A stretch of 63,315 bases of DNA, the filler included, from Octopus bimaculoides (taxonomy: Eukaryota): assembly GCF_001194135.2 (NCBI RefSeq). It is 9 parts of 9 records of this genome, joined end to end, with 100 filler letters (N's around TTAATTAATTAA, not from the genome) between each part and the next. Parts side by side here need not be neighbours in the genome. Positions count along the whole stretch, not along the records: positions 12,308 to 37,689 come from NC_068982.1; 8 more parts are not named here. One strand, given 5' to 3'. Position numbers and translations under genes: made by a program. A model generated the notes under the pieces. That model was not told where the DNA came from, did no database searches, and saw only the letters and a program-made list of their open reading frames with translations. Position 1 is the stretch's first letter; every line of letters begins with the position of its first letter. Shown here piece after piece: positions 12,208-37,212 of this stretch.

Positions 12208-12308
12208 NNNNNNNNNNNNNNNNNNNNNNNNNNNNNNNNNNNNNNNNNNNNTTAATTAATTAANNNNNNNNNNNNNNNNNNNNNNNNNNNNNNNNNNNNN
12301 NNNNNNNA

Positions 12309-12725
12309 TACCCTTCTCCCCCAGGCCGGTCTACTTCTGGGCACCCATATTGCCTTGATCTCGAAGTCGCTAACTACTAATCTGTGTTGGGGTGTACATT
12401 CTTCGCTAGGGAGGGTTTTGGCATTTATAAGCCTCCCTCTTTCTCTAGTTCTGGCGAGGATGTAGTCAATTTGGTTAGAGTGTCTGCCGGATTGGTAGGT
12501 GACTAGGTGACAGGCAGGTTTCCTGAAGTTGGTATTGCAAACCATAAGATCGGTTGCATCACAGAACTCCAGCAGTCTGGTTCCCTCCTCGTTGCGGGAA
12601 CTGAAGCCATAGCCTCCATGTATGCCATGGAAGCCTCCAGCACGACGTCCAACATGACCATTGAAGTCACCAGCCACAAAGAGAAGGTCTCTGTATCTTG
12701 TCGACAAGGTAGTTTGCAAGAGGGC
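12309..12725 (-). mobile_element. RTE-clade LINE fragment, AP-endonuclease region
   Basis: LFVAGDFNGHVG...RNEEGTRLLEFCDATDLMVCNTNFRK...NQIDYILAR: canonical non-LTR endonuclease motifs. Confidence 0.9.
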
Positions 12726-12730
12726 TAATG

Positions 12731-13308
12731 GAGCTTCGTCGTGGGTTCTATTAGCATAGAGATTCCAGTACGAAATGGTGGTGGAGTTGGAAAGCGAGCT
12801 GGTTATATGTTTGGGATTCGCGCGCGAGTCGAAGAGGAAATGGTGGAAGAAGTGGTGATTCAGAGAGTGAGAGAGAGAGAGATAGAATACAATAGGGAGG
12901 GAGAGGGAGAACCGGCAGCAGTACATCATGCTGGTCAAATTCGTTAGGTTTTTAGGAAAAAGTTGAAAGAAACACAACCTGAGATTAAATGTTTAGATCG
13001 GTAACAGAAATGAGAGTAAAAAATCGTAATTTTTAAAGGGAGTTAGAGACAAATTTCAGTCAGGTTTGGGCTAAGGAGCAAAAACTTCAGCAAGTAGATG
13101 CAAAGACGATAGATCATGTGAGATAGAGAAAAAATACATAAATAATCATGAATTCAAGACATAAATGTATAGCTAGAGAGAACGAAGTGGGGTGATGGAT
13201 GGGGAGCGCATCAGAAGGGATAATATATGAAAAATAGGAATGACTTAGCTATTGTTCATGTCTTGGTGAGCTTCGTCGTGGGTTCTATTAGCATAGAGAT
13301 TCCAGAAC

Positions 13309-17972: not shown

Positions 17973-18951
17973 AAACTTCTGTTTAGTCTAAACTGTTAAT
18001 TTGAACAGAATTTAGGTAAGAAAATAATCATTACACTTCTTATTGCTTTCATTTTTATGGGTTTCTACATGTAGAAACTCATTTACACACATCCATATAC
18101 ATCCATACATAAAGATTTCTCAAAATGGAATATGTTAAAAAGATCAGATATTTTAGACATGGCTCTTGATCTGAAGGATCTTATTTGAACTATTAGCTCT
18201 CTTCTCTTCCTCATAACAAACTAAATTCTTCTTCTTTGTGAACATTTTGAACTTACTATGTACTATATGTAGAATATGTGTGTGTGTGTATCTGTGTGTG
18301 CATGCATGTGTATGTGGGTGTGTGTGCATGTGTGTGTGTGAATGTGTATGTATGTGTGTGCATATATATATGTTCGTATGTGTGTATGTATGTGTATATG
18401 AATGAGTTATATGCATACATATACATACATACATATATACATATATACATATGTATATATATATATATACATACATATATATATACATACACATAAATAT
18501 ATACATATGTATATATGTGTATATATATATGTATATATATACATATATATACATATATNNNNNNNNNNNNNNNNNNNNNNNNNNNNNNNNNNNNNNNNNN
18601 NNNNNNNNNNNNNNNNNNNNNNNNNNNNNNNNNNNNNNNNNNNNNNNNNNNNNNNNNNNNNNNNNNNNNNNNNNNNNNNNNNNNNNNNNNNNNNNNNNNN
18701 NNNTATATATATATATATATATGAATATAAATATATATATATAAATATATACATATACATAAACTGTACATATACACTAAGTGTAAACTGTAAATACACT
18801 AACTGTAAACAACATGAAGTACGAAAACGAGTGAGTTAAATGTGCAAACAATGAGAGAAAAAAACTGGAAAACAGGAGAAGTAACACAAAAAATGGCACT
18901 TCATCAGTTGTTGGTTGTCTATCTATGCCTCACATATTTATATATATGTAC

Positions 18952-19915: not shown

Positions 19916-20402
19916 NNNNNNNNNNNNNNNNNNNNNNNNNNNNNNNNNNNNNNNNNNNNNNNNNNNNNNNNNNNNNNNNNNNNNNNNNNNNNNNNNNNNN
20001 NNNNNNNNNNNNNNNNNNNNNNNNNNNNNNNNNNNNNNNNNNNNNNNNNNNNNNNNNNNNNNNNNNNNNNNNNNNNNNNNNNNNNNNNNNNNNNNNNNNN
20101 NNNNNNNNNNNNNNNNNNNNNNNNNNNNNNNNNNNNNNNNNNNNNNNNNNNNNATATGTGTGTGTGTGTATGTATGCATGTATACATGCACACACACACG
20201 CACACACACACACACACACATATACATATATTAATGTTTGTTTTTATGTTATAATAAAAACAATTTTACATTAATCTGATGGGTTACTTTATATTTTTAT
20301 AGAGTACAAATTTATTATTCTTAAACAAGAATCTTATTGACAGTGACTTTGAAGTTTTGGCTAGCTAAGAAGAGGAGTTGGACAAGGATGTGTTATGTTA
20401 TC

Positions 20403-22145
20403 AGTCAGTTTTTTAATTCCATATTCCTCTAATGCTTTTATCAACTCAATGACAATTCTGTCTGGCCCAACAGCTTTGTTTTTTCTCATCATTTTGTTGG
20501 TAGGATCTTTGGACCCTCATTAGAGTCAGAAAAACTTGGTAAGGTTTGTCTCTTATCATGAAATAAATCTCCTATATACTCTGTCCATCTATTCAAAATA
20601 TCGATCTTCTCAACCAGCTTAGTACCATCCTTTGCTCTGATACACCTGGTGTTTAAGCATTCTGTCTTTCTGTCAGAGATCTCATTTATCTTCTGATGTA
20701 CTTTGTTTCCTATTGGAAATTACCTTTCAATTTCTTCACACTGTCCATTCAGCTAGGTCTCTTTAGCCTCCCTACGCTTCCATTTAATCAATCTATCCAA
20801 CTCCCTATACTCTTTGGATTTCCTGTTCTTGATCTTCAGTCCTTTATTCATCATTGAAAGGATCTCCTCAGTCATCCATTTCTTTTTCATTTTATTCATT
20901 TTCTTTGGACAGATTTCCTGGGCTGTTCTACTAATGTGTTCTCATTACTTCCTGGGTATTCTCCTTGCCATTATCAATCAATTAATTAAATTTGTTCTCT
21001 ACGTTGATGAAATACTCCAGCTCTACCTCTAGCTTATTCAGCCACTCAATATCCAGTTTCTCTGCAGTGCTTCTCTCTCTTCAACTTCTCTAATTTACAT
21101 TGGAGTGTGCACACCAATGGTACATGGTCGCTTCCACAGTCTACTCCTGGATATGCTTTTGCATATTTCAGTGATCTTTTAAATCTGCCATTGATGGAGA
21201 TATAATCAATCTGGTTTCTTGAGCTGTCACCAGGGTCCCTCCATGTATAAATTCTTCTAGGGTGCTCCTTAAACCATGTATTTGTAATAATCATATTCTT
21301 TACCACACACTACTATATCCATCTCTCAGCTCACTCATCTTTCTCACCAATTCTATACTGACCAACTGCTTGCCATTCTGTCCATGCCCCACTTTTGCAC
21401 TCAGATCTCCCTTGATGATATTACTTTCATCTGACTTGCTCTTCCAAGGTCTCATAGAAGGCATCAGAATTCTCTTCAGTGCTATCTGCTGTGGGTGCAT
21501 AAGCAACTATGGTGGAGATATTAAATGGATGTCTATGCTGATTGACCAGCAGGACTCTTTCACTTACTATCCAGTAGTCAAGGATACACTCTTATTTCCT
21601 TACTGCCCACAAGGGGCTACACACAGAGGGGACAAACAAGGACAGACAAACGAATTAAGTCGATTATATCGACCCCAGTGCGTAACTGGTACTTATTTAA
21701 TCGACCCCGAAAGGATGAAAGGCAAAGTTGACCTTGGCGGAGTTTGAACTCAGAACGTAGCGGCAGACGAAATACCGCTAAGCATTTCGCTCGGCATGCT
21801 AACGTTTCTGCCAGCTCGCCACCTTTTTCTTTTTTTTTTTTTTTTTCAGAGAATGTAATCAGCACTAAAATAGGATACACTCTGTGTATCCTATTTTACA
21901 GAGTGTATCAAGGATACACTCTGCCATATCAGGATCTAAAAGTAGTCTTACTAATTTTTCATATTTGCTACCACATGTATACTTCATCTTGAAATCATTG
22001 ATGATGAAGTTACCATTATTCAGACACTTTGTTTTGTATATACCCAGGATGTTGATGTTTAGTCTTGTCATCTCTTGCTGAACATTTTCAAGCTTGCCAC
22101 TTTGATATAAAGTTGTCACATTCCAGGTTCCAACTCTGACAGTGC
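20403..22145 (-). mobile_element. Decayed RTE LINE ORF2 5' half (endonuclease to pre-RT linker), interrupted by a SINE
   Basis: TVRVGTWNVTTLYQSGKLENVQQEMTRLNINILGI; IITNTWFKEHPRRIYTWRDPG..RNQIDYI..GSDHVPL; ends at IKALEEYGIKKLT. Confidence 0.9.
21593..21822 (-). mobile_element. Young SINE family A copy inserted in the LINE, 15-bp duplication TCAAGGATACACTCT
   Basis: Duplication at 21578-21592 and 21908-21922; CpGs mostly intact. Confidence 0.9.
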
Positions 22146-22175
22146 TGCTGCTGCTGCTGTTGTTGTTGTTGTTAT

Positions 22176-22224
<49 letters not shown>

Positions 22225-22262
22225 CTTCAAGTAATTTCTGGGGAATTTTTTTTTTCAGAAAA

Positions 22263-22329
22263 ATGTATACTCAGATTTTCTTCTTTGTCTGCTGCCTTTC
22301 CAGTCTGTTGTGTTCCATCAGTGCAGGAG
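22263..22329 (+). CDS. Secreted Cys-rich protein, coding exon 1 (signal peptide MYTQIFFFVCCLSSLLCSISAG)
   Basis: Acceptor ttttttttcag| then AAAAATG; hydrophobic core and small-residue cleavage site; donor GAG|GTATGT, phase 1. Confidence 0.85.
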
Positions 22330-22613
22330 GTATGTTACTTTACTAAGTATTTACCAGTTCATTTTAAAGATGGTATGATGTGATTAAAGAAAAAAAAAAA
22401 AATAACTGGCTGCTATTTCTAGCTGGTCAAACCTCATTTGATTATTGATATTGTTAATATTATAGTTGTTGCTGCTGTTATTCCTTTTATTGTTGTTACT
22501 GCGGAAGTTTGCTATCCTGTTGTTATTATTGCTATGGTTATTGTTGGCATATTTGTGGTGACTTCTGTTTCTGTTGCTATTATTGTTGTTACTTCTGTAT
22601 ATGCTGTTGCCAT

Positions 22614-22998
22614 TGTGGAGGCGCAATGGCCCAGTAGTTAGGGCAGTGGAATTGCAGTCGCAGGATCGTGGTTTCAATTCCCAGATCGGGTGTTGTGAGT
22701 GTTTATTGAGCGAAAACACCTAAAGCTCCACGAGGCTCCGGTCAGGGGATGGTGGCGAACCCTGTTGTACTCTTCCACCACAACTTTCTCTCACTCTTAC
22801 TTCCTGTTTCTGTTGTGCCTGTAATTCAAAGGGTCAGCCTTGTCACACTGTGTCACGCTGAATATCCCTGAGAACTACGTTAAGGGTACACGTGTCTGTG
22901 GAGTGCTCAGCCACTTGCACGTTAATTTCACGAACAGGCTGTTCCGTTGATCAGATCAACTGGAACCCTCGTTGTCGTAAGCGACGGAGTGCCAACAA
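22614..22998 (+). mobile_element. Full-length tRNA-derived SINE family B with (CAA)n tail
   Basis: GGAGGCGCAATGGCCCAGTAGTTAGGGC A-box, GGTTTCAATTCCC B-box; same family at 35505-35893, 55285-55548, 60570-60885 and fragments at 10215 and 14930. Confidence 0.9.
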
Positions 22999-24939
22999 CA
23001 AAGCTGTTGCCATTACTGCTGCTACTGCTGTTGTTGCTGCTGCTACTGCTGCTGCAGTCATTGTTACAATTACTATTCACTGTTGGTGTCTATAGCCCTG
23101 TGTCAGCCCTGATCGAGCAATCCTATAATCAAAGGCATTTCAATCATATCCATCCAGTCATTTTAGGGTATCTAAGACTACATTATCAGATGTGTCCTTT
23201 CCTTATTAAGACTAATAATGTGGAATGTCATTTCAGGGAGATTTAGTTGCTGCTTCTAGCAGGTTGACTGACTACATAGAGGTTCCCTTGTTGGCTCACT
23301 ACAATAACAGAAGATATTGTTGTTGCTGTTATTGTTGCACCCTTGGAATTATTAAAATTATGGTCGGTTATAACTATAGTTTAACTCAATTGTGTCAAGC
23401 TGACTGCAAGCCAGATCTGTCCCATGGCAATATTTAATCAAGGTGCTGGTTCAATTTTATAAAAAAAAAATTTGAAAGCCTTATAAAAAATTTTTTTAAA
23501 TATTCTGTAAAATATATATCATTGGCATGGGCTCAGAATTAGAGCCTGACAGGAATTGGGATTAACATCTGTTCTGATCAAATCAATGCACCTTAACAAA
23601 TCATTCGTTATCTCAATCACTGAAAAAGAAGCTTATGAATCCATATATCAAAAGGAGTGAACTATTTCCCCTTAACTCTATCAATACATAAGAGATTGGG
23701 GGGGGGGGAGATTGTGCACATGTTCATTCGAATGGAGTCTAGTGATATTACATGAATGCTATTGAAAGGCTTTGTAACTGAAACTGTTAAGCATTAGTCT
23801 TCTTAAGAACTGTAGAACTGTACATATCCATCTTTGAGCAATTTCTATCTGTTGGCACATTCACAGGACTTAATAGGACTATATAAACACTATGTGGTGT
23901 ATATACACATTTCTGCAGACAAACTGTTCTAATATTTCATTCCTTACTTCCTTGATAAAGTTGTTATAGTGTATATTGACCTATTTAACTGTTTAGTTTT
24001 GCCTACATTATGATAGGGTTTCTAGAAATAATTGTTCCTATCTGGTTCACGAAATCTAGTTTATGCTTCAATGTAGCCCACAAAGCCAAACAAGTTTGAT
24101 ACCACTGGTTTAACTACTGCACACAAAATATCATCATCATCATCATCATCATCATTATCATTTAGCATTCATTTTCCATGCCTGCATGAGTTACATGATT
24201 TGAACAGATCTGGTGATGTCATAATATTTGAGGTATGATCTTTCTAAAGTATTGAAGAGTATTGAAAAGGTGTTTTATTGATCCATGAAAAAGAACAATG
24301 TTTTATATCTTATTTTTAATTTGTTTCAGTGATTGGGCAGTGGCCATTCTTGGTACCACCTTGAAAGGTTTAGTCAAACGAACTGACCCCAGTCGTTTAA
24401 GTCTGGTACTTATTCTATTTGGTCTCTTTTACCAAAATGCTAAGTTACAGGGATGTAAACAAACCAGTATGGAGGAATGGAGGGATGGATGCATTGAGGG
24501 GTTACATCGTGCTCCCTGTCAGCTTTGGCATGGTTTCTATGGCTGGATGTCCTTCACAATGCCAGTGCATTTTTTCATGCTACCAACACTAGTACAGTTG
24601 CCAAGTAACTTTCAAGACAGAAAAGAAGTGAAGGTAAAAAGGGGAAAAGGGAAAACCCTCTCGACTAAGTGGCAGCAGTATTTGAAAGAGTAAGAAAGTG
24701 ATTTAATGTCAGGTTCAAGGAGAGCTCCCTTGCTATAGAGAAGATACATAGTTACTCTGCATGTATGTAAAAGTGGGTGTATCTGGGAAAGCTAAGATGG
24801 TAGTGATGTGGTACCAGAGCAAAAACCTTGAATAGTTCCTGAAAATACTAGAGGTGACAGAGATGTTAGAACAAATATAACTCAATGAAATAAACATAAT
24901 TGTTCAGTTTGTATTCCTTTAGTACATGTATCAATAATA

Positions 24940-25155
24940 ATCCCTTCTACTATAGGCACAAAGCCTGAAATTTTGGGGGAGGTGGCTAGTTGATTACAAC
25001 AACTCCAGTGTTCCACTGGTACTTAATTTATCAACCCAAAAAAGATAAAAGGCAAAGTCGATCTCAGTGGAATTTGAATTCAGAATGTAAAAACAGATGA
25101 AATTCCACTAAGCATTTTTCCCAGCATGCTAACAATTCTGCCAGCTCGCCACCTT
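24940..25155 (-). mobile_element. CpG-decayed SINE family A copy
   Basis: Reverse complement of the family A head and body. Confidence 0.8.
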
Positions 25156-25447
25156 CATATATTAATAATAATAGTAATAAAATTAATTGATGTGGTAACT
25201 GTTGCTTGTTATTTCCCTTTACATTCTGAATTCAAGTTTCACCTGGACCCACTTTGAATCTTATCTTTCTGGGGTTCATAAATTAAGTTCCAGCCAAGTA
25301 CTGAAGCTGCTATAACTAATTATAACCTCCTGTGAAATGTGTTGCTCTGTCTCTATCTTAAAAAAATTGTTGTTTCTATTTTCTTTAAGGTTATATAGGG
25401 TTACATCGAAAGATTCTCTATAAGAAATAATTTCTCTTGGATTTTAG

Positions 25448-25558
25448 CTCCATCATCCTGTACACATAAAGGAGTCACTCATAAACATGGTGATGAATGG
25501 GGAGAGAAGTGTATCAAATTTGGCTGTCAGCAGGGTAAAGTTAAATTAATAAAAGCAG
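25448..25558 (+). CDS. Secreted Cys-rich protein, exon 2 (module 1: APSSCTHKGVTHKHGDEWGEKCIKFGCQQGKVKLIKA)
   Basis: attttag|CT ... CAG|GTAAGA; 111 nt, phase 1-1, open; C-x9-G-x2-W-x3-C-x4-C. Confidence 0.9.
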
Positions 25559-25818
25559 GTAAGACTTGTTGGCTATATTAATTTCATATAGGAATGTATG
25601 TGCTTTGTAAATTCTAGTTCCACAAATACAATGCAGTTGTAGAGAAGAAAGTGAACAGGCATGGTTGTGTGGGTAAGGAGCTTATTTTGCAACCATGGGG
25701 TTTCCGGCTTAGCCCCACTGTGTGGAACCTTGGGAAAGTGTCTTCTACTATAGCTCTGGGCCAACCAATGCCTTGTAAGTGAATTTGGTAAATGGAAACT
25801 GTAGAAGCTCATCATATA

Positions 25819-25852
<34 letters not shown>

Positions 25853-26945
25853 CAAACACACACACACACAAGATCTAGTGATCTAAGTGTAGGAAGTTCA
25901 TAAGCTTTAGGCTGTAAGCAGCCGGTATAGAGACCAAAAAGTGGTCAGTATACAATATGATACAATGACAATTTATTGGTATTGAGAGTTATACACTTTT
26001 TCCCATATTGAAGCTGCGAAGAAATTTGATAAGCTGTTAGATTCTATGTAGCTCACTATTAGCAACTAATGCTGCTAAAAATGTGAATAGAAATCCAAAT
26101 TGAGGGAGTGGAACAGGTAAAAATGTATGCTGAAGCTCATGATACAATTGTTATGTGGTGAAGTCTACTCAACATAGCTAATCATTGGATGAGATTACCT
26201 TAGCCACAACACAATCATGAGTTCAGTTCACACAGAAGACCAGCTCTATCCAATTTGCTACTTCATCAGAAACAGTTCTGGAGACAGGGATGTAGAGTGA
26301 GTGTGAACTAAAAACTGATCACACTGATTGGGCAATGCCTCATCATTGCTTAAACCAGTAAAAGTAAATAGCAACCCAAATGCTTTTAAATCAGATCCCA
26401 ATGCTGGATGTTCAAGAACCAAATGAAAGGCAGATTTTTCAATCCTGATTCCAAAAAAAAATATAATATGTCTATGGAGAGCAAATGTAGACTGAGATAC
26501 AGGGATCCCAGACAGACAGAATTTCATCATCATTATTATTTAACGCCTGTTGTCCATGCTGGCATGGGTTGGACAGTTTGATCAGGGCTGGCAAGCTGGA
26601 AGGCTGCACCAGACTTCAGTCTGATTTGGCATGGTTTCTATGGCTGGATGCCCTTCCTAACGCCAACCACTCCAAGAGTGTAATGGGTGCTTTTACGTGT
26701 CATGACACCAGTATCTGCCATGATTGCAATTTTGCTTGGCTTGATGGGTCTTCTTCTCAAGCATGACATATGCCAAAGGTCTCAATGGGTCTTCTCAAGC
26801 ATGTCACAAAGCTAAAGGTCTCCATCAGGCCCAACACTTGAAAGGAGTTCAGCCACTTTGCCTCCGTAGGACCCAAAATCACTTTTATTAATATAGATGT
26901 AATAGTTGTAAACTAAAAAATTTACTTTCTTTTTCTTTATTACAG

Positions 26946-27059
26946 CTTGTGACAGTGGTGCTATATGTAGAGCAATAGGTAGTCACTGGACAAATTATTG
27001 CATTGATTACACTTGCCTCCATAAAAATGGTAAATTAGTCGTTAAGAAACTTAACATGC
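26946..27059 (+). CDS. Secreted Cys-rich protein, exon 3 (module 2: ACDSGAICRAIGSHWTNYCIDYTCLHKNGKLVVKKLNM)
   Basis: tttttctttattacag|CT ... TGC|GTAAGT; 114 nt, phase 1-1, open. Confidence 0.9.
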
Positions 27060-27649
27060 GTAAGTTGAGTGAATTGCTTCAAATTATTAAATTATCTAAT
27101 TTTTTTTTCTTTCAAATGTTTATTCTTTTACATGTTTCAGCCCTAGGGTTGTGACCATGCTAGAGCACTGCCAATTCATTTATTTTAACCAAGACTAAAT
27201 GTTATAGATATCTATTCATGTAGATATCTAAATTCCTTGTCAGTATTTAACAGAAGTAAATAACTACATTTATTACATTTCAAGAACTGCAGCTAGCTGA
27301 ATCAAATGTCAATCAGTTGACTTAGGTATTAACACTTCATATCCAGTCTGTAGAGCTCTGTGACCATACTCAAAATACTTAACTCTCAAATAAACCAAAC
27401 ATCTAAAATGAAATTGGGACCATGGATGGTGCATCTTTCTGCATTGGAAAGCAAAAATATTCTTTATTAGCTTGCAGTACTGCAATGAAATCCTTCATTG
27501 AATATTGTTCAGAAAAGTGGATCATTTTTACAAATCTGCCTTTGCTTATTTTTTGCATGACAAAACCTACAGGTGGTGCTCTTATAATCCAATGTCTTAT
27601 GAGACACACATGTATCTATGCCAATGTTTAATTTAAATTTCATTTTAAA

Positions 27650-28620
27650 TCATTACCATCATCATCATTTAATGTCCATTCTATCATAGGTTGGATGGTT
27701 TGACCAGGGCTGTTAAGCTGGGGGGCTGCACCAGACTCTAGTCTGATTTGGCATGGCTGGATGCCCTTCCTAACACCAACCACTCCAAGAATGTAATGGG
27801 TGCTTTTGTGTGTCAGTTGCGTGACACCTGTATCTGCCATGACTACAAATTCACTTGGCTTGATGGATCTTCTTCTCAAGCACAGCATACTGCCAAAGGT
27901 CTTGGTCATTTGTCATTGCATCTGTGAGGCCCATTGTTCGATGATCATGCATCACCAGCTCATCCCAGGTTTCCCTCCACTTTTAGAGATCGGCACTTCT
28001 TCAAACAGCTGTCCACATTCATCCACATCACGACCAAATCAGTGCAGTTGTCTCTCTTGCACACATCTGATGCTCTTATATCCAACTTTTCTCTCAAGAT
28101 GCTTATATTGTCATACATGCACACTGACATTACACATCCAGCGAAGCATACTCACTTCTTTTCTTTCAAGCTTATGCATGTCCTTGACAGTCACAGCCCA
28201 TGTTTCACTGCCATGTAGCATGGCTGTTTGCACACAGGCATCATACAATCTACCTTTCACTCTGAGGGAGAAGCCCTTTGTTACCAACAGAAGTAAGAGC
28301 TCTCTGAACTTTGCCCATCCTATTCTTATTCTGGCAGCTATGCTCTCAGAGCATCCATCTCCACTATTGACTTGGTCACCTAGATAACGGAAGCTACCAA
28401 CTACTTCTAGCTTACCCCGCTGACATTTGATGGAGTCTATTTTCTGTACATTTGTAGTATTTATTGTACCTATGCACTGTCCACACACAAAAACTAGTTT
28501 CCCTGTTAACTTCCCTCTGATATTGCTGCACCTCTTACATGTCCATAGCTTACACTAGATACATCTTATGGAGTTTCTACCAACGCCTTTTCTACAGATT
28601 GAACAGGGCCATCTACCTGA
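27650..28620 (-). mobile_element. Decayed RTE LINE 3' portion with 3' UTR and (GAT)n tail
   Basis: FRYLGDQVNSGDGCSESIAARIRIGWAKFRELL...GRLYDACVQTAMLHGSETW; tail matches 46340-46515. Confidence 0.9.
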
Positions 28621-29619
28621 AAGGATTTGTGATTTGCCTGCTTTCCTACTTACTTAGACTTTGGTTTTTGCTACATTAATTTCTTCTCTAGTTCTGAAAC
28701 AGTGAAGGATTTGTTGCTGTTTAGTCCAAAGGCCACCTTGATCAAACAGATTTATGATCAAAGGCATTCCGGTTGTGACCATTACATCTTAATTTCTGAT
28801 ACATATTCCAATGTTTCCTTTCTATTTTTTAAAAGATGGTAGTGTAATTTGAAGAAAATTTGGCTGTTGTTTTTAGCAGGCTAAATGACTCTGTGGTGGC
28901 CCTCCTTATTGGCTGTATATATGACGAGTTCCTATTCCATTTCTCAAAACCAAAAGCTGTCAATATATAGTTATGTCAATTTAAATTATAGGCTCAAATT
29001 CCATCAAAGTGAACTGAACTCAAAAGTAATTAGATGAGATTAATTCAACTATACTTCTACCACAAAATGTTAAAAATCAATATTATCAAAAGAACTATTG
29101 TATGAAAATTTTTAAATTCTTGTTTCCCTTGCATTTCTTGATAAGCATTAATCAATAACTTCATCATCATCCTTTAATGGCTGTTTTCCATGCTGACATG
29201 GGCTGGACAGTTTGACCTGTGCTGGTAAACCAGAATGCTGCACTAGGTTCCAGTCCAATTTGGCTTAGTTTCTACGGTTGGATACTCTTCCTACTGCCAA
29301 CCAATTTACAGTGTGTGCTGGGTGCTGTTAACATGGTGCTGCCATGAGTGCTTTCTACATGGCACCAGTACAGGACTCTTGCAGGCCAATCCTCTTCACC
29401 AGGGGGAGTGGCCTCAATTAATTGAAACTTCTTGGTTCACTGTATTAACCATGTAAGCATATCATTTCCGATTTGTTTTTTATAAAGCGGCTGTCTCTTT
29501 TTATTATTATTCTACAATCATTCTTTCTTATTACTTGAAAAGCTTTGTTGCAATTTTTCATTCTCAATTCATTTGAAGGGGTAGAAAAATAAAGGGATTT
29601 TTCTTTAAACCTACTTCAG

Positions 29620-29745
29620 GATGTGAAGGACATGACCATAAATGTCACAAATTTGGCGAAACGTGGAATGATACCTTACATGGAAAATGTACAGTACGAA
29701 AATGTGTAAAAAAAGACCATTTTGCTGTAACAATTAAGGTATCTG
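29620..29745 (+). CDS. Secreted Cys-rich protein, exon 4 (module 3: RCEGHDHKCHKFGETWNDTLHGKCTVRKCVKKDHFAVTIKVS)
   Basis: cctacttcag|GA ... CTG|GTAAGT; 126 nt, phase 1-1, open; same Cys/G-x-x-W spacing as exons 2 and 3. Confidence 0.9.
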
Positions 29746-30211
29746 GTAAGTAAAGATTTTTTGTACTTTTTGTAAAGAACAATAATTAAAGGGGCTGAAA
29801 ATTATGCAATTTATATATTTCATTTCTCTGAATGTCAACAGTAAGACATTGGCAAATTGTCAACATTTAAAAAATTGTTTGTGGATGACAAGATTATTCT
29901 TAAAATGATCAAATTGTATCTAAAATAATTGGATAATATGGAAATACAAAAATTTCAAACAGTAGCATAATTTTTTTGGCTGTGGCGAAGAAGAGTCTAA
30001 CATTTCAAGCAGAACACTTTGCCAGATAGAGATTATAGGTAGCCTTCCAGCCGGAGATTTGACAACTTATACAAGAAAATTAGTCTCAATCTAAGACAAC
30101 AAACCCCCAGTATTCCAGTTCATATAGTTGTAAATAGGTACAATGTGAGGTGTTTTTTTTTATCATTTCTATAAACATGCTTTTTATACAGTTTTTATTT
30201 TCTTTTTTCAG

Positions 30212-30219
30212 ATTGTTAA
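30212..30219 (+). CDS. Secreted Cys-rich protein, terminal coding exon (D-C-stop) followed by 3' UTR
   Basis: tttttattttcttttttcag|AT TGT TAA; phase 1 matches; brings mature Cys to an even 12; AATAAA at 30336-30341 and 30428-30433. Confidence 0.7.
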
Positions 30220-31341
30220 ATACAGATTTAACATAAAATTGAACTTTCTTGCTGATGCAAACCATCATCAGTTTGCTGGGATTATACACATTTTATCTCA
30301 TGTACTGGTCTTTGCCTGTGATATTGTATCCAAGAAATAAATTTTATCCAAAATTTTGAGTTAAAGTTTTAGTTAATTGTAAAAATGTAACCAGTTTTAT
30401 TTGTGAGTATCTTTTTCTGAAAGAGGAAATAAAGGGATATAACATAAAATAAACTAGTCTGTCTCTATATTACAGTGATACATACACATTCTCTCTTTCA
30501 TACACACACACATACATATATAAATGCAGGTATGCCTGTGTAATTGAGAAGTTAGCTTTGCAACCTTGTGGCTTCAGGTTTAGTCCCACTGCATGAAACT
30601 TTGGGCAAGTGTCTTCTACTGTAGCTCTGGGCTGACCAAAGCCTTGTGAGCAGTGGATTTGGTAGAGGTAAGCTGAAAGATGCCCGTCTTGTGTGTACAT
30701 ATACATGTGTGTGTGTCCATACATGTTTGTGACTCCTTGTCTTGACATCATGCAATAGTTTCTAAATAAGCATCATTGTCATGTAAGTGATGTCCTTTAT
30801 TTCCAGTCTTCCACAGGCAAGTATTTTCTTGCTTGGAAACAGGTGGCAATTGGCAAGAGGAAGGGCATCCAGCTATAAGAAATCTTCCTTGACAAATTCT
30901 GTCAGACCCATGCAACATTAGTTAAGTGGACATTAAAATTATATTGAGACAAAGAGACATAAACATATACATGGCAGGCTTCTTTTAGGTTTTGTGCACC
31001 AAATCCATTCACAAGGTTTTGGTCAGCCCAAGACTATAGTAGAGGACACTTGCTCAGAGAATGTAATGTGATGTACCATTTTACAGTAGAAGACACTTGC
31101 CCAAAGTGACATGCACTGGAACTGGATCTAAACTATATTGTAGGAGCAAACCCAGAACCATACTATTAAGTTCCCTCCAAAAACATGCATGATTAAGATT
31201 AAAACATTTTTCAGTTTTAATGATAAAATAAACATATGTACATGAAACTTGAAGACAAAAACACACAGAAGTAAATTTTCGTATGACAAAATAAATTATA
31301 GAAACAGGTTAAAAATAACAATTTTAAAATCCTTTTTTTTA

Positions 31342-31551
31342 TTATTTTTTACTGCATCGAGGTTTCCTTGTCCTTTTAGTGATGTTATTTTCAGAACCAT
31401 TACTACTAATTAATTCTGGAAAGTCATTATCATTACAAATGTCTATCTCCTTTGAATTATCATTTTCTTCAACTTCATTAATACAGGTAATATTTAAGGT
31501 GTTGAATGAATTCTGATCAAAAATTATTGAGTCTTTCTTCTGATGTCTTGT
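31342..31551 (-). CDS. Terminal exon of an unidentified minus-strand gene: TRHQKKDSIIFDQNSFNTLNITCINEVEENDNSKEIDICNDNDFPELISSNGSENNITKRTRKPRCSKK*
   Basis: Acceptor tttcttcatccatttcag|ACA; 69 open codons, phase 0, matching the phase-0 end of exon 33867-34046. Confidence 0.65.
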   Translation of the reverse strand, partial: TRHQKKDSIIFDQNSFNTLNITCINEVEENDNSKEIDICNDNDFPELISSNGSENNITKRTRKPRCSKK

Positions 31552-36926: not shown

Positions 36927-37212
36927 NNNNNNNNNNNNNNNNNNNNNNNNNNNNNNNNNNNNNNNNNNNNNNNNNNNNNNNNNNNNNNNNNNNNNNNNNN
37001 NNNNNNNNNNNNNNNNNNNNNNNNNNNNNNNNNNNNNNNNNNNNNNNNNNNNNNNNNNNNNNNNNNNNNNNNNNNNNNNNNNNNNNNNNNNNNNNNNNNN
37101 NNNNNNNNNNNNNNNNNNNNNNNNNNNNNNNNNNNNNNNNNNNNNNNNNNNNNNNNNNNNNNNNNNNNNNNNNNNNNNNNNNNNNNNNNNNNNNNNNNNN
37201 NNNNNNNNNNNN

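Follow-up and report, generated by a model that had tools for sequence, protein, structure and literature searches.

The DNA examined here is a stretch of 63,315 nucleotides (nt) from Octopus bimaculoides (assembly GCF_001194135.2), referred to as a whole as the window, in which positions 22263-30219 contain the plus-strand gene LOC106883997. The best overall explanation of our results is that this annotated gene encodes a secreted protein of three tandem fibronectin type I (FnI)-like modules, which belongs to a family related to the Pfam model Fn1_2 and quite probably has an extracellular binding or adaptor role. The gene lies in the part of the window derived from NC_068982.1 (positions 12,308 to 37,689), and the examined piece is animal DNA that is rich in AT (34.6% GC) and contains microsatellites and assembly gaps. 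An earlier note, made from the sequence alone, had described a hidden five-exon gene, and its splicing scheme was reproduced exactly: joining the plus-strand segments 22263-22329, 25448-25558, 26946-27059, 29620-29745 and 30212-30219 across four GT-AG introns, all of them in phase 1, yields 426 nt in frame and a product of 141 amino acids (aa). This product is identical over its full length (100% identity, 100% length) to XP_014790645.1 and UniProt A0A0L8I5G9, 'uncharacterized protein LOC106883997 [Octopus bimaculoides]', and the recorded span of the coding sequence, CM046602.1 92630319-92638275 (7,957 nt), corresponds to 22263-30219 of the window. Exactly the same model is carried by RefSeq, UniProt and EukProt. 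LOC106883997 is thereby confirmed as a real gene that is already annotated but uncharacterised, and it was hidden from the open reading frame (ORF) track alone, which is not the same as being unannotated. The invisibility to the ORF track itself is borne out: the stop-to-stop frames holding the five exons comprise 40, 60, 80, 58 and 14 codons, and the ORF list of the examined piece contains no in-frame ORF of at least 100 aa that overlaps the exons. With exon frames this short, a prokaryote-style list would miss the gene.

The donors of introns 1 to 4 read, in order, gtatgt, gtaaga, gtaagt and gtaagt, and all four acceptors consist of a polypyrimidine tract followed by AG. Coding exon 1 (22263-22329) contains the start codon and the putative signal peptide MYTQIFFFVCCLSSLLCSISAG and ends in phase 1 at the first of these donors. 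The 12 Cys of the mature protein and the three C..G-x-x-W..C-x4-C units are present in the translated product as originally described. Coding exon 2 (25448-25558) encodes FnI-like module 1, which is of the N-cap type and contains C27...G-D-E-W...C44-x4-C49, with its closing Cys61 at the start of exon 3. Coding exon 3 (26946-27059) specifies module 2, a canonical internal module with C61-x5-C67-x10-C78-x4-C83 and a β-strand tail, and coding exon 4 (29620-29745) specifies the His-rich module 3 (EGHDHKCHK...LHGKC) with C99-x6-C106-x14-C121-x4-C126 and a tail. There is one module per coding exon, and the exon boundaries lie one residue ahead of the closing Cys of the module before. This placement of each closing Cys at the start of the next exon explains the existence of coding exon 5 (30212-30219), a mini-exon of 8 nt with the rest of the Asp140 codon, Cys141 and the stop codon; from the Cys register we infer that it supplies the twelfth Cys, which would close module 3. 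Read-through past any of the donors leads to a stop within 2-31 codons, and past exon 4 it would give '...VSGK*' (the asterisk denoting the stop) and leave 11 mature Cys, an odd number.

Comparison with related sequences supports the same structure. The ortholog of Octopus vulgaris and Octopus sinensis (P0002) has 141 aa, is 91% identical and has AG and GT at the matching exon ends. Between O. bimaculoides and O. sinensis, the exons are 96.7% and the aligned introns 91.6% identical (Fisher p = 6.5e-5). The paralog LOC106883995 (P0003; 140 aa, 57% identical) is found on the same strand 16.7 kb further upstream, so that the two genes form a tandem pair, and its exon lengths of 67/108/114/126/8 nt compare with 67/111/114/126/8 nt in LOC106883997. 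The transcript L005, a polyadenylated read-assembly contig of 1,092 nt from run SRR25158136, encodes a protein (P0006) that is 44% identical to the octopus protein. It is uninterrupted across the equivalents of junctions 2-3, 3-4 and 4-5, including the 8-nt last exon, and ends in '...EEC*', while its 5' part resembles a retained intron 1. The end 'DC*' is kept in the ortholog and appears as 'KC*' in the paralog and as 'EC*' in L005. On these comparative grounds, the read-through to further exons that had been considered as an alternative ending is not supported.

Five is the number of coding exons, and to that extent the original count stands, but the gene probably has an additional, as yet unplaced non-coding exon upstream of coding exon 1. 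Immediately before the start codon, at 22246-22262 on the plus strand, ttttttttttcag provides a polypyrimidine tract and CAG and is followed by aaaaATG, an arrangement that probably represents a 3' splice acceptor. The ttttttttttcag motif, 4 nt 5' of the start codon, is kept in O. sinensis and O. vulgaris, and homology breaks off about 30 nt before the ATG; conservation of the motif next to the ATG combined with the loss of upstream homology suggests such a non-coding 5' exon. In the paralog LOC106883995 (locus L004), 'tttgtttacag' is found about 38 nt before the ATG. On the 3' side, the first AATAAA after the stop codon (30336-30341, plus strand) is a candidate polyadenylation signal, and further ones are located at 30428 and 30448. 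Permissive tblastn of the product against the piece returned its own exons alone and no paralogous ones, and Rfam, tRNA and tandem-repeat scans of the piece yielded nothing bearing on the gene.

Residues 4-18 form a hydrophobic core, and residues 5-18 are modelled by AlphaFold2 as an N-terminal helix with a low predicted local distance difference test (pLDDT) score. Core and helix suggest that residues 1-22 constitute a signal peptide, or at least a signal-peptide-like N-terminus, and that the protein is secreted; the proposed secreted, three-module Cys-rich architecture holds on this footing. The remaining 119 residues (13.3 kDa, isoelectric point (pI) about 9.1) contain all 12 Cys. The full-length model, built with a 12-sequence family alignment, is all β and confident, with a mean pLDDT of 88.7, about 95 for residues 25-141 and likewise about 95 for module 2 (exon 3); in module 1 the strands comprise residues 26-29, 32-35, 39-41, 45-50 and 53-63. 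When this model was compared with the PDB by Foldseek, the first matches were FnI6-9 and FnI7-9 in a model of the TG2 complex (E 4.7e-5 and 1.5e-4), and the top set as a whole consisted of the fibronectin tandems FnI7-9, 8-9, 2-3 and 4-5 (E 4.7e-5 to 5e-2). Crystal and nuclear magnetic resonance structures of FnI modules among the matches were 3ejh, 3gxe, 2cg6, 2cku, 3cal and 2rl0, with probabilities of 0.95-1.0. Module 3 modelled alone with an alignment of 84 modules reached a pLDDT of 92.5, and its best full-length superpositions were again FnI modules, with template modelling (TM) scores TMq of 0.61-0.67 and root-mean-square deviations (rmsd) of 1.8-3.1 Å (3gxe_B, TMq 0.67 over 43 columns; 2cku, TMq 0.67, rmsd 1.8 Å). 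In addition, the family profile aligns the last module to fibronectin 4F1-5F1 (E 0.022-0.035). These models give good but not conclusive support for an FnI-like fold class. A search of a viral structure library gave no match at E <= 1e-3.

The connection to a named domain family runs through relatives of the octopus protein. Several of them match Pfam Fn1_2 (PF23003) across two consecutive modules with 15.6-26.0 bits against a cutoff of 27, and only two Mytilus proteins, P0045 and P0047, pass it with 30.0 and 30.4 bits; the UniRef name of the Mytilus members is 'Abnormal cell migration protein 18-like fibronectin type I domain-containing protein'. The octopus protein finds P0029, a member of the 90% cluster that also includes P0045 and P0047, by phmmer with E 3.2e-4, and hhalign of a profile of the octopus-type unit (A1) with the Mytilus group (A4) gave 97% probability and E 1.1e-10. 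As judged from these alignments, the octopus protein owes its place as an Fn1_2-related member to transitive homology and not to a direct score on the model, and the family can be placed as a divergent lophotrochozoan branch of the MIG-18-type FnI-like repeats.

The likeness to both FnI modules and the N-terminal half of VWC domains, which had been pointed out at the outset, holds up. The sole Pfam match of the octopus protein is VWC, with 18.1 bits, at residues 27-68 and model positions 1-42 of 57. Together with the NEL/NELL2, CCN3 and collagen IIA VWC modules in the Foldseek output and a weak SVWC match in one relative, this match could be taken to mean that the protein is a degenerate VWC/chordin-like growth-factor antagonist, which would bind BMP-type ligands via fingers resembling VWC subdomain 1. 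We consider this very improbable. The VWC score is below the gathering threshold of 27.6 bits, and in the fold search NEL/NELL2, assemblies of VWF and mucin and the VWC modules of CCN3 and collagen IIA rank only after the FnI tandems. VWC domains have ten Cys with the motifs C-x2-C-x-C and C-C-x2-C, whereas the octopus modules have four Cys each, lack both motifs and have no equivalent of VWC subdomain 2. Identity as a VWC domain was rejected on the grounds of the absent motifs and the score. SVWC, the eight-Cys single-domain VWC of arthropods (PF15430), does not apply to the family either: P0025 alone reached 17.5 bits (cutoff 27), and the octopus protein gave no match.

When 1.84 billion representative proteins were scanned exhaustively with phmmer, 31 proteins were retrieved at E <= 1e-3, the best of them with E-values of 3.5e-46 (the paralog), 1e-32, 3.7e-31 and 3.2e-25. 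They include members from gastropods (Physella, Aplysia, Haliotis, Elysia, Patella, Lottia, Bradybaena, Biomphalaria and Bulinus), from bivalves (Mytilus, Mya, Pinctada and Ylistrum) and from one nemertean (Tubulanus). The suspicion that the protein represents an uncharacterised, mainly molluscan family was well founded, as all relatives that could be named are labelled 'uncharacterized' or 'hypothetical'. The accompanying statement that it could not be placed in a named family no longer applies: the protein is one of the FnI-like repeat proteins of a lophotrochozoan family in which some Mytilus members pass the Fn1_2 threshold. Examples of relatives are Octopus LOC106883995, Physella LOC131937956, Lottia LOTGIDRAFT_230687/689/690, Haliotis LOC124134368, the VWA-repeat proteins of Pinctada and Ylistrum and the ApeC-repeat proteins of Mya and Ylistrum. 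When the A1 profile was used in a word-indexed search of a set of 5.8 billion proteins, five proteins were found, all of them already seen or adjacent, and the module profile A3 had no match in the same set. Literature searches for the accession and LOC identifiers of LOC106883997 and six relatives and for MIG-18-like names found no paper, and neither a paper on mollusc ApeC nor one on limpet adhesive contained a description of FnI-like repeats.

Members occur in two forms, either as single-unit secreted proteins of 140-185 aa with the same 12 Cys or as long proteins with up to 33 tandem modules. In some, the array is preceded by a VWA domain (Ylistrum P0007, Pinctada P0017) or the modules surround an ApeC domain (Mya P0009, Ylistrum P0016). 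The single-unit members share all 12 Cys without change, apart from the Lottia member, which has 10; an alignment of 12 single-unit members shows no variation at C27, C44, C49, C61, C67, C78, C83, C99, C106 and C126 and a conservation of at least 90% at G31 and G37. A pattern search yielded 190 distinct C-x5/6-C-x10/12-C-x4-C modules in about 30 proteins, and the 5/10/4 spacing of octopus exon 3 is the commonest among them. The general plan is an N-cap module, a variable number of internal C-x4-C modules and one terminal module with the classical FnI C-x-C. Replacement of C-x-C by C-x4-C, which had been pointed out in the octopus protein, is not peculiar to it; C-x4-C is the rule for internal modules throughout the family and the last module alone differs: nearly all other members have one C-x-C per unit, whereas the Octopus proteins and P0006 have none at all and end with C-x4-C in the terminal module. 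On the available alignments, the terminal C-x4-C is a cephalopod variant. The cephalopod members (P0001-P0003, P0006 and P0034) are also distinguished by composition, with 10-12 His (8-10%) and 17-18 Lys in about 118 residues and a pI of 9.1-9.5, compared to 0-3 His and a pI from 5 to 9.9 in gastropod single-unit members, and their His residues are concentrated around module 3.

Three retrieved proteins (P0010, P0020 and P0024) were rejected as family members since, for all their E-values of 4e-10 to 6e-5, the Cys module pattern is missing from them, and these matches are probably spurious; they comprise one repetitive low-complexity protein, one ankyrin-kinase protein and one with a different repeat. 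Four members of Lottia gigantea, LOTGIDRAFT_230690, 230687, 230689 and 230691 (P0027, P0031, P0012 and P0039), have neighbouring locus numbers on one scaffold, so that tandem clustering is not confined to Octopus. In LOTGIDRAFT_230691, two FnI-like modules run into a tyrosine-recombinase domain (PF00589), which probably reflects a transposon-chimeric gene model. P0004 from Bulinus truncatus (KAH9500480.1, 1,469 aa) combines four FnI-like units with several Cys-loop ligand-gated ion-channel domains and is more likely a merged prediction than a true architecture.

Several results count against assigning the protein an FnI-like fold and a matrix adaptor role. The octopus protein passes no Pfam threshold and has no match to Fn1_2 (E <= 10) or fn1. 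Used alone, it found no sequence match among PDB sequences; its likeness in sequence to FnI modules of solved structure is no more than marginal (E 0.02-0.035) and limited to module 3, and the module-level profile of 84 modules gave only a chance antibody match among PDB sequences. The global TM-scores to FnI tandems are low (0.25-0.31), as is to be expected from rigid-body superposition of flexible three-bead chains. For the single module of 43 residues, the Foldseek E-values are not significant (>0.7), and generic three-stranded fragments superpose on it nearly as well as FnI modules do. The rate of evolution is a further point: the coding sequences of O. bimaculoides and O. sinensis differ by 12 nonsynonymous and 2 synonymous changes (omega about 1.1-1.5 on just 14 substitutions), a pattern that a rapidly evolving protein of defence or reproduction would explain no less well than a matrix adaptor. 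None of the Cys, Gly and Trp landmarks is lost between the two species.

The nonsynonymous excess between close species on a fixed Cys scaffold is also one of the arguments for a different role, in which the protein would be a humoral defence effector, secreted, cationic, Cys-stabilised and His-rich, that attaches to the surface of microbes and kills or agglutinates them. The basic composition of the mature cephalopod proteins, rich in Lys and His, and the tandem duplication of the gene would be in line with such a role, as would the fusion of family modules to ApeC in some members, since binding of peptidoglycan has been demonstrated for the ApeC domain of proteins from molluscs and amphioxus (PMC9585378). 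However, no similarity to known antimicrobial peptide families was found in Pfam or the PDB, the estimate of dN/dS is based on 14 substitutions only, and some gastropod single-unit members are acidic (pI about 5), indicating that cationicity is not a trait of the family. We regard a defence function as unlikely, although it is not without weight.

General hallmarks of toxins, namely small size, secretion, richness in disulfides, fast evolution and a tandem paralog, could further point, in line with the venom gland suggested by the earlier note, to a salivary (venom) component or another exocrine secretion that acts on prey. The comparison of the tandem paralogs speaks against this, as the proportion of nonsynonymous differences (pN) is 0.24 and that of synonymous differences (pS) is 0.77, which is saturated; this indicates that the pair is old and under long-term constraint rather than the result of a recent expansion of the toxin type. 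Moreover, no toxin-family match was obtained with Pfam, PDB sequences or Foldseek, homologs are present in animals that graze or filter-feed and are not venomous, among them Haliotis, Patella, Lottia, Mytilus and Pinctada, and five accession identifiers of the gene and its ortholog were not found in searchable full text. There is hardly more than a slight chance that the protein serves as a venom component.

The extracellular binding or adaptor role that we favour can be outlined as follows. Once secreted, the mature protein would act as a small extracellular binding or adaptor protein in which each four-Cys module would be closed by two disulfides in the 1-3/2-4 pattern of FnI, and we infer the pairs C27-C49, C44-C61, C67-C83, C78-C99, C106-C126 and C121-C141. 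Each module would expose the edge strand of a three-stranded sheet, like the FnI modules of fibronectin, and the tandem modules could jointly engage a matrix component or an extended peptide through β-strand addition. The matched FnI entries of the PDB show FnI pairs in complex with peptides from collagen and from bacterial adhesins. The partner would most likely be a molecule of the extracellular matrix or one bound to a surface because of the VWA and ApeC fusions within the family and, by analogy, the basement-membrane role of MIG-18. The His- and Lys-rich surface that is specific to cephalopods might conceivably render binding sensitive to pH or metal ions.

Retroelement-like sequences and repeats surround the gene. 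On the minus strand at 21865-22230, an ORF resembles the endonuclease of a long interspersed nuclear element (LINE) ('...VGTWNVTTLYQSGKLENVQQEMTRLNINILG...'), for which Pfam gave no supporting match, and a perfect trinucleotide microsatellite, (TGA)16, is located at 22176-22224. Both lie 30-400 nt upstream of the start codon and are missing from the orthologous site of O. sinensis and O. vulgaris, and they may represent a lineage-specific insertion adjoining the first coding exon. Further retroelement-like ORFs on the minus strand are found at 12308-12977, where Exo_endo_phos_2 scored 22.5 bits, below the cutoff of 27.4, and in intron 3 at 28111-28488, where the ORF resembles the tail of a reverse transcriptase and has no Pfam match. 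A neighbouring minus-strand gene extends from 31342 onward past the end of the piece; its product has 192 aa (189 aa in O. sinensis and O. vulgaris) and no Pfam match on record, and its last coding exon ends in '...KRTRKPRCSKK*' with the stop at 31342. It was considered as a family member and rejected, as it shows no similarity and its C-terminal exon is unrelated. Assembly gaps in the form of N runs occur at 18559-18703, 19916-20153 and 36927-37212 and are flanked by TA/TG-rich microsatellites; the long 'ORFs' at these three places were dismissed as artefacts of repeats and gaps.

LOC106883997 does not open a long-standing question, but it adds a cephalopod member, the His-rich variant without C-x-C, to a widespread lophotrochozoan family of FnI-like repeat proteins. 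Its value lies in a domain assignment for proteins that are so far 'uncharacterized' and in a tractable 13-kDa target for studies of structure and binding. The case also shows that a multi-exon gene of a small secreted protein can be pieced together correctly from sequence letters alone. A more far-reaching proposal combines two elements, a functional innovation specific to cephalopods, with a His-rich, strongly basic protein that has lost the terminal C-x-C, and an ancient bilaterian origin of FnI fingers; that both are true together seems improbable to us. If it were the case, the cephalopod branch could be an extracellular binder switched by metal ions or pH, with a role, for instance, in secretions that harden or adhere or in the defence of barrier tissues, and FnI-type fingers would be an ancient matrix module of Bilateria and not one invented by chordates. 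Hynes described FN1 domains as specific to chordates, or as largely confined to them (PMC3308698). The family sits awkwardly with this statement, to which the MIG-18-type Fn1_2 model of Pfam already concedes a nematode exception.

The closest comparison for the octopus protein is provided by the unnamed lophotrochozoan FnI-like repeat proteins, which likewise have a signal peptide, an N-cap, a run of C-x5/6-C...C-x4-C modules and terminal module; apart from their His content (10-12 versus 0-3), the cephalopod copies differ from the other members in ending exactly on the last Cys. With the VWC/chordin-like domains (PF00093), whose subdomain 1 is itself FnI-like, the likeness is limited to the C-x(n)-G-x2-W...C spacing of module 1, which aligns with the first 42 positions of the model, and the low Cys number and missing second subdomain set the octopus units apart. 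MIG-18 and the Fn1_2 proteins are likewise small secreted proteins made of FnI-like Cys modules. In Caenorhabditis elegans, MIG-18 is a small secreted protein that localises to basement membranes and is genetically a cofactor of the ADAMTS protease MIG-17 (PMC4856095). It is linked to the octopus protein here via the Fn1_2 model and the Mytilus members, orthology is not claimed, and its role in how the distal tip cells of the gonad migrate is not transferable to octopus. The FnI modules of vertebrate fibronectin, tPA and factor XII share with the octopus modules the size of about 40-45 residues with four Cys, the succession of a small β-hairpin and a three-stranded antiparallel sheet, the latter preceded by a G-x-x-[WFY] turn, and the tandem arrangement like beads on a string. 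They differ in that all three octopus modules have C-x4-C instead of C-x-C and give no match to the classical Pfam fn1, and in that the octopus is a protostome, but the classical C-x-C is present in the terminal module of the relatives of the octopus protein, where it aligns with 4F1-5F1. As in the octopus gene, each FnI module of the vertebrate fibronectin gene is encoded by one exon and separated from the next by phase-1 introns.

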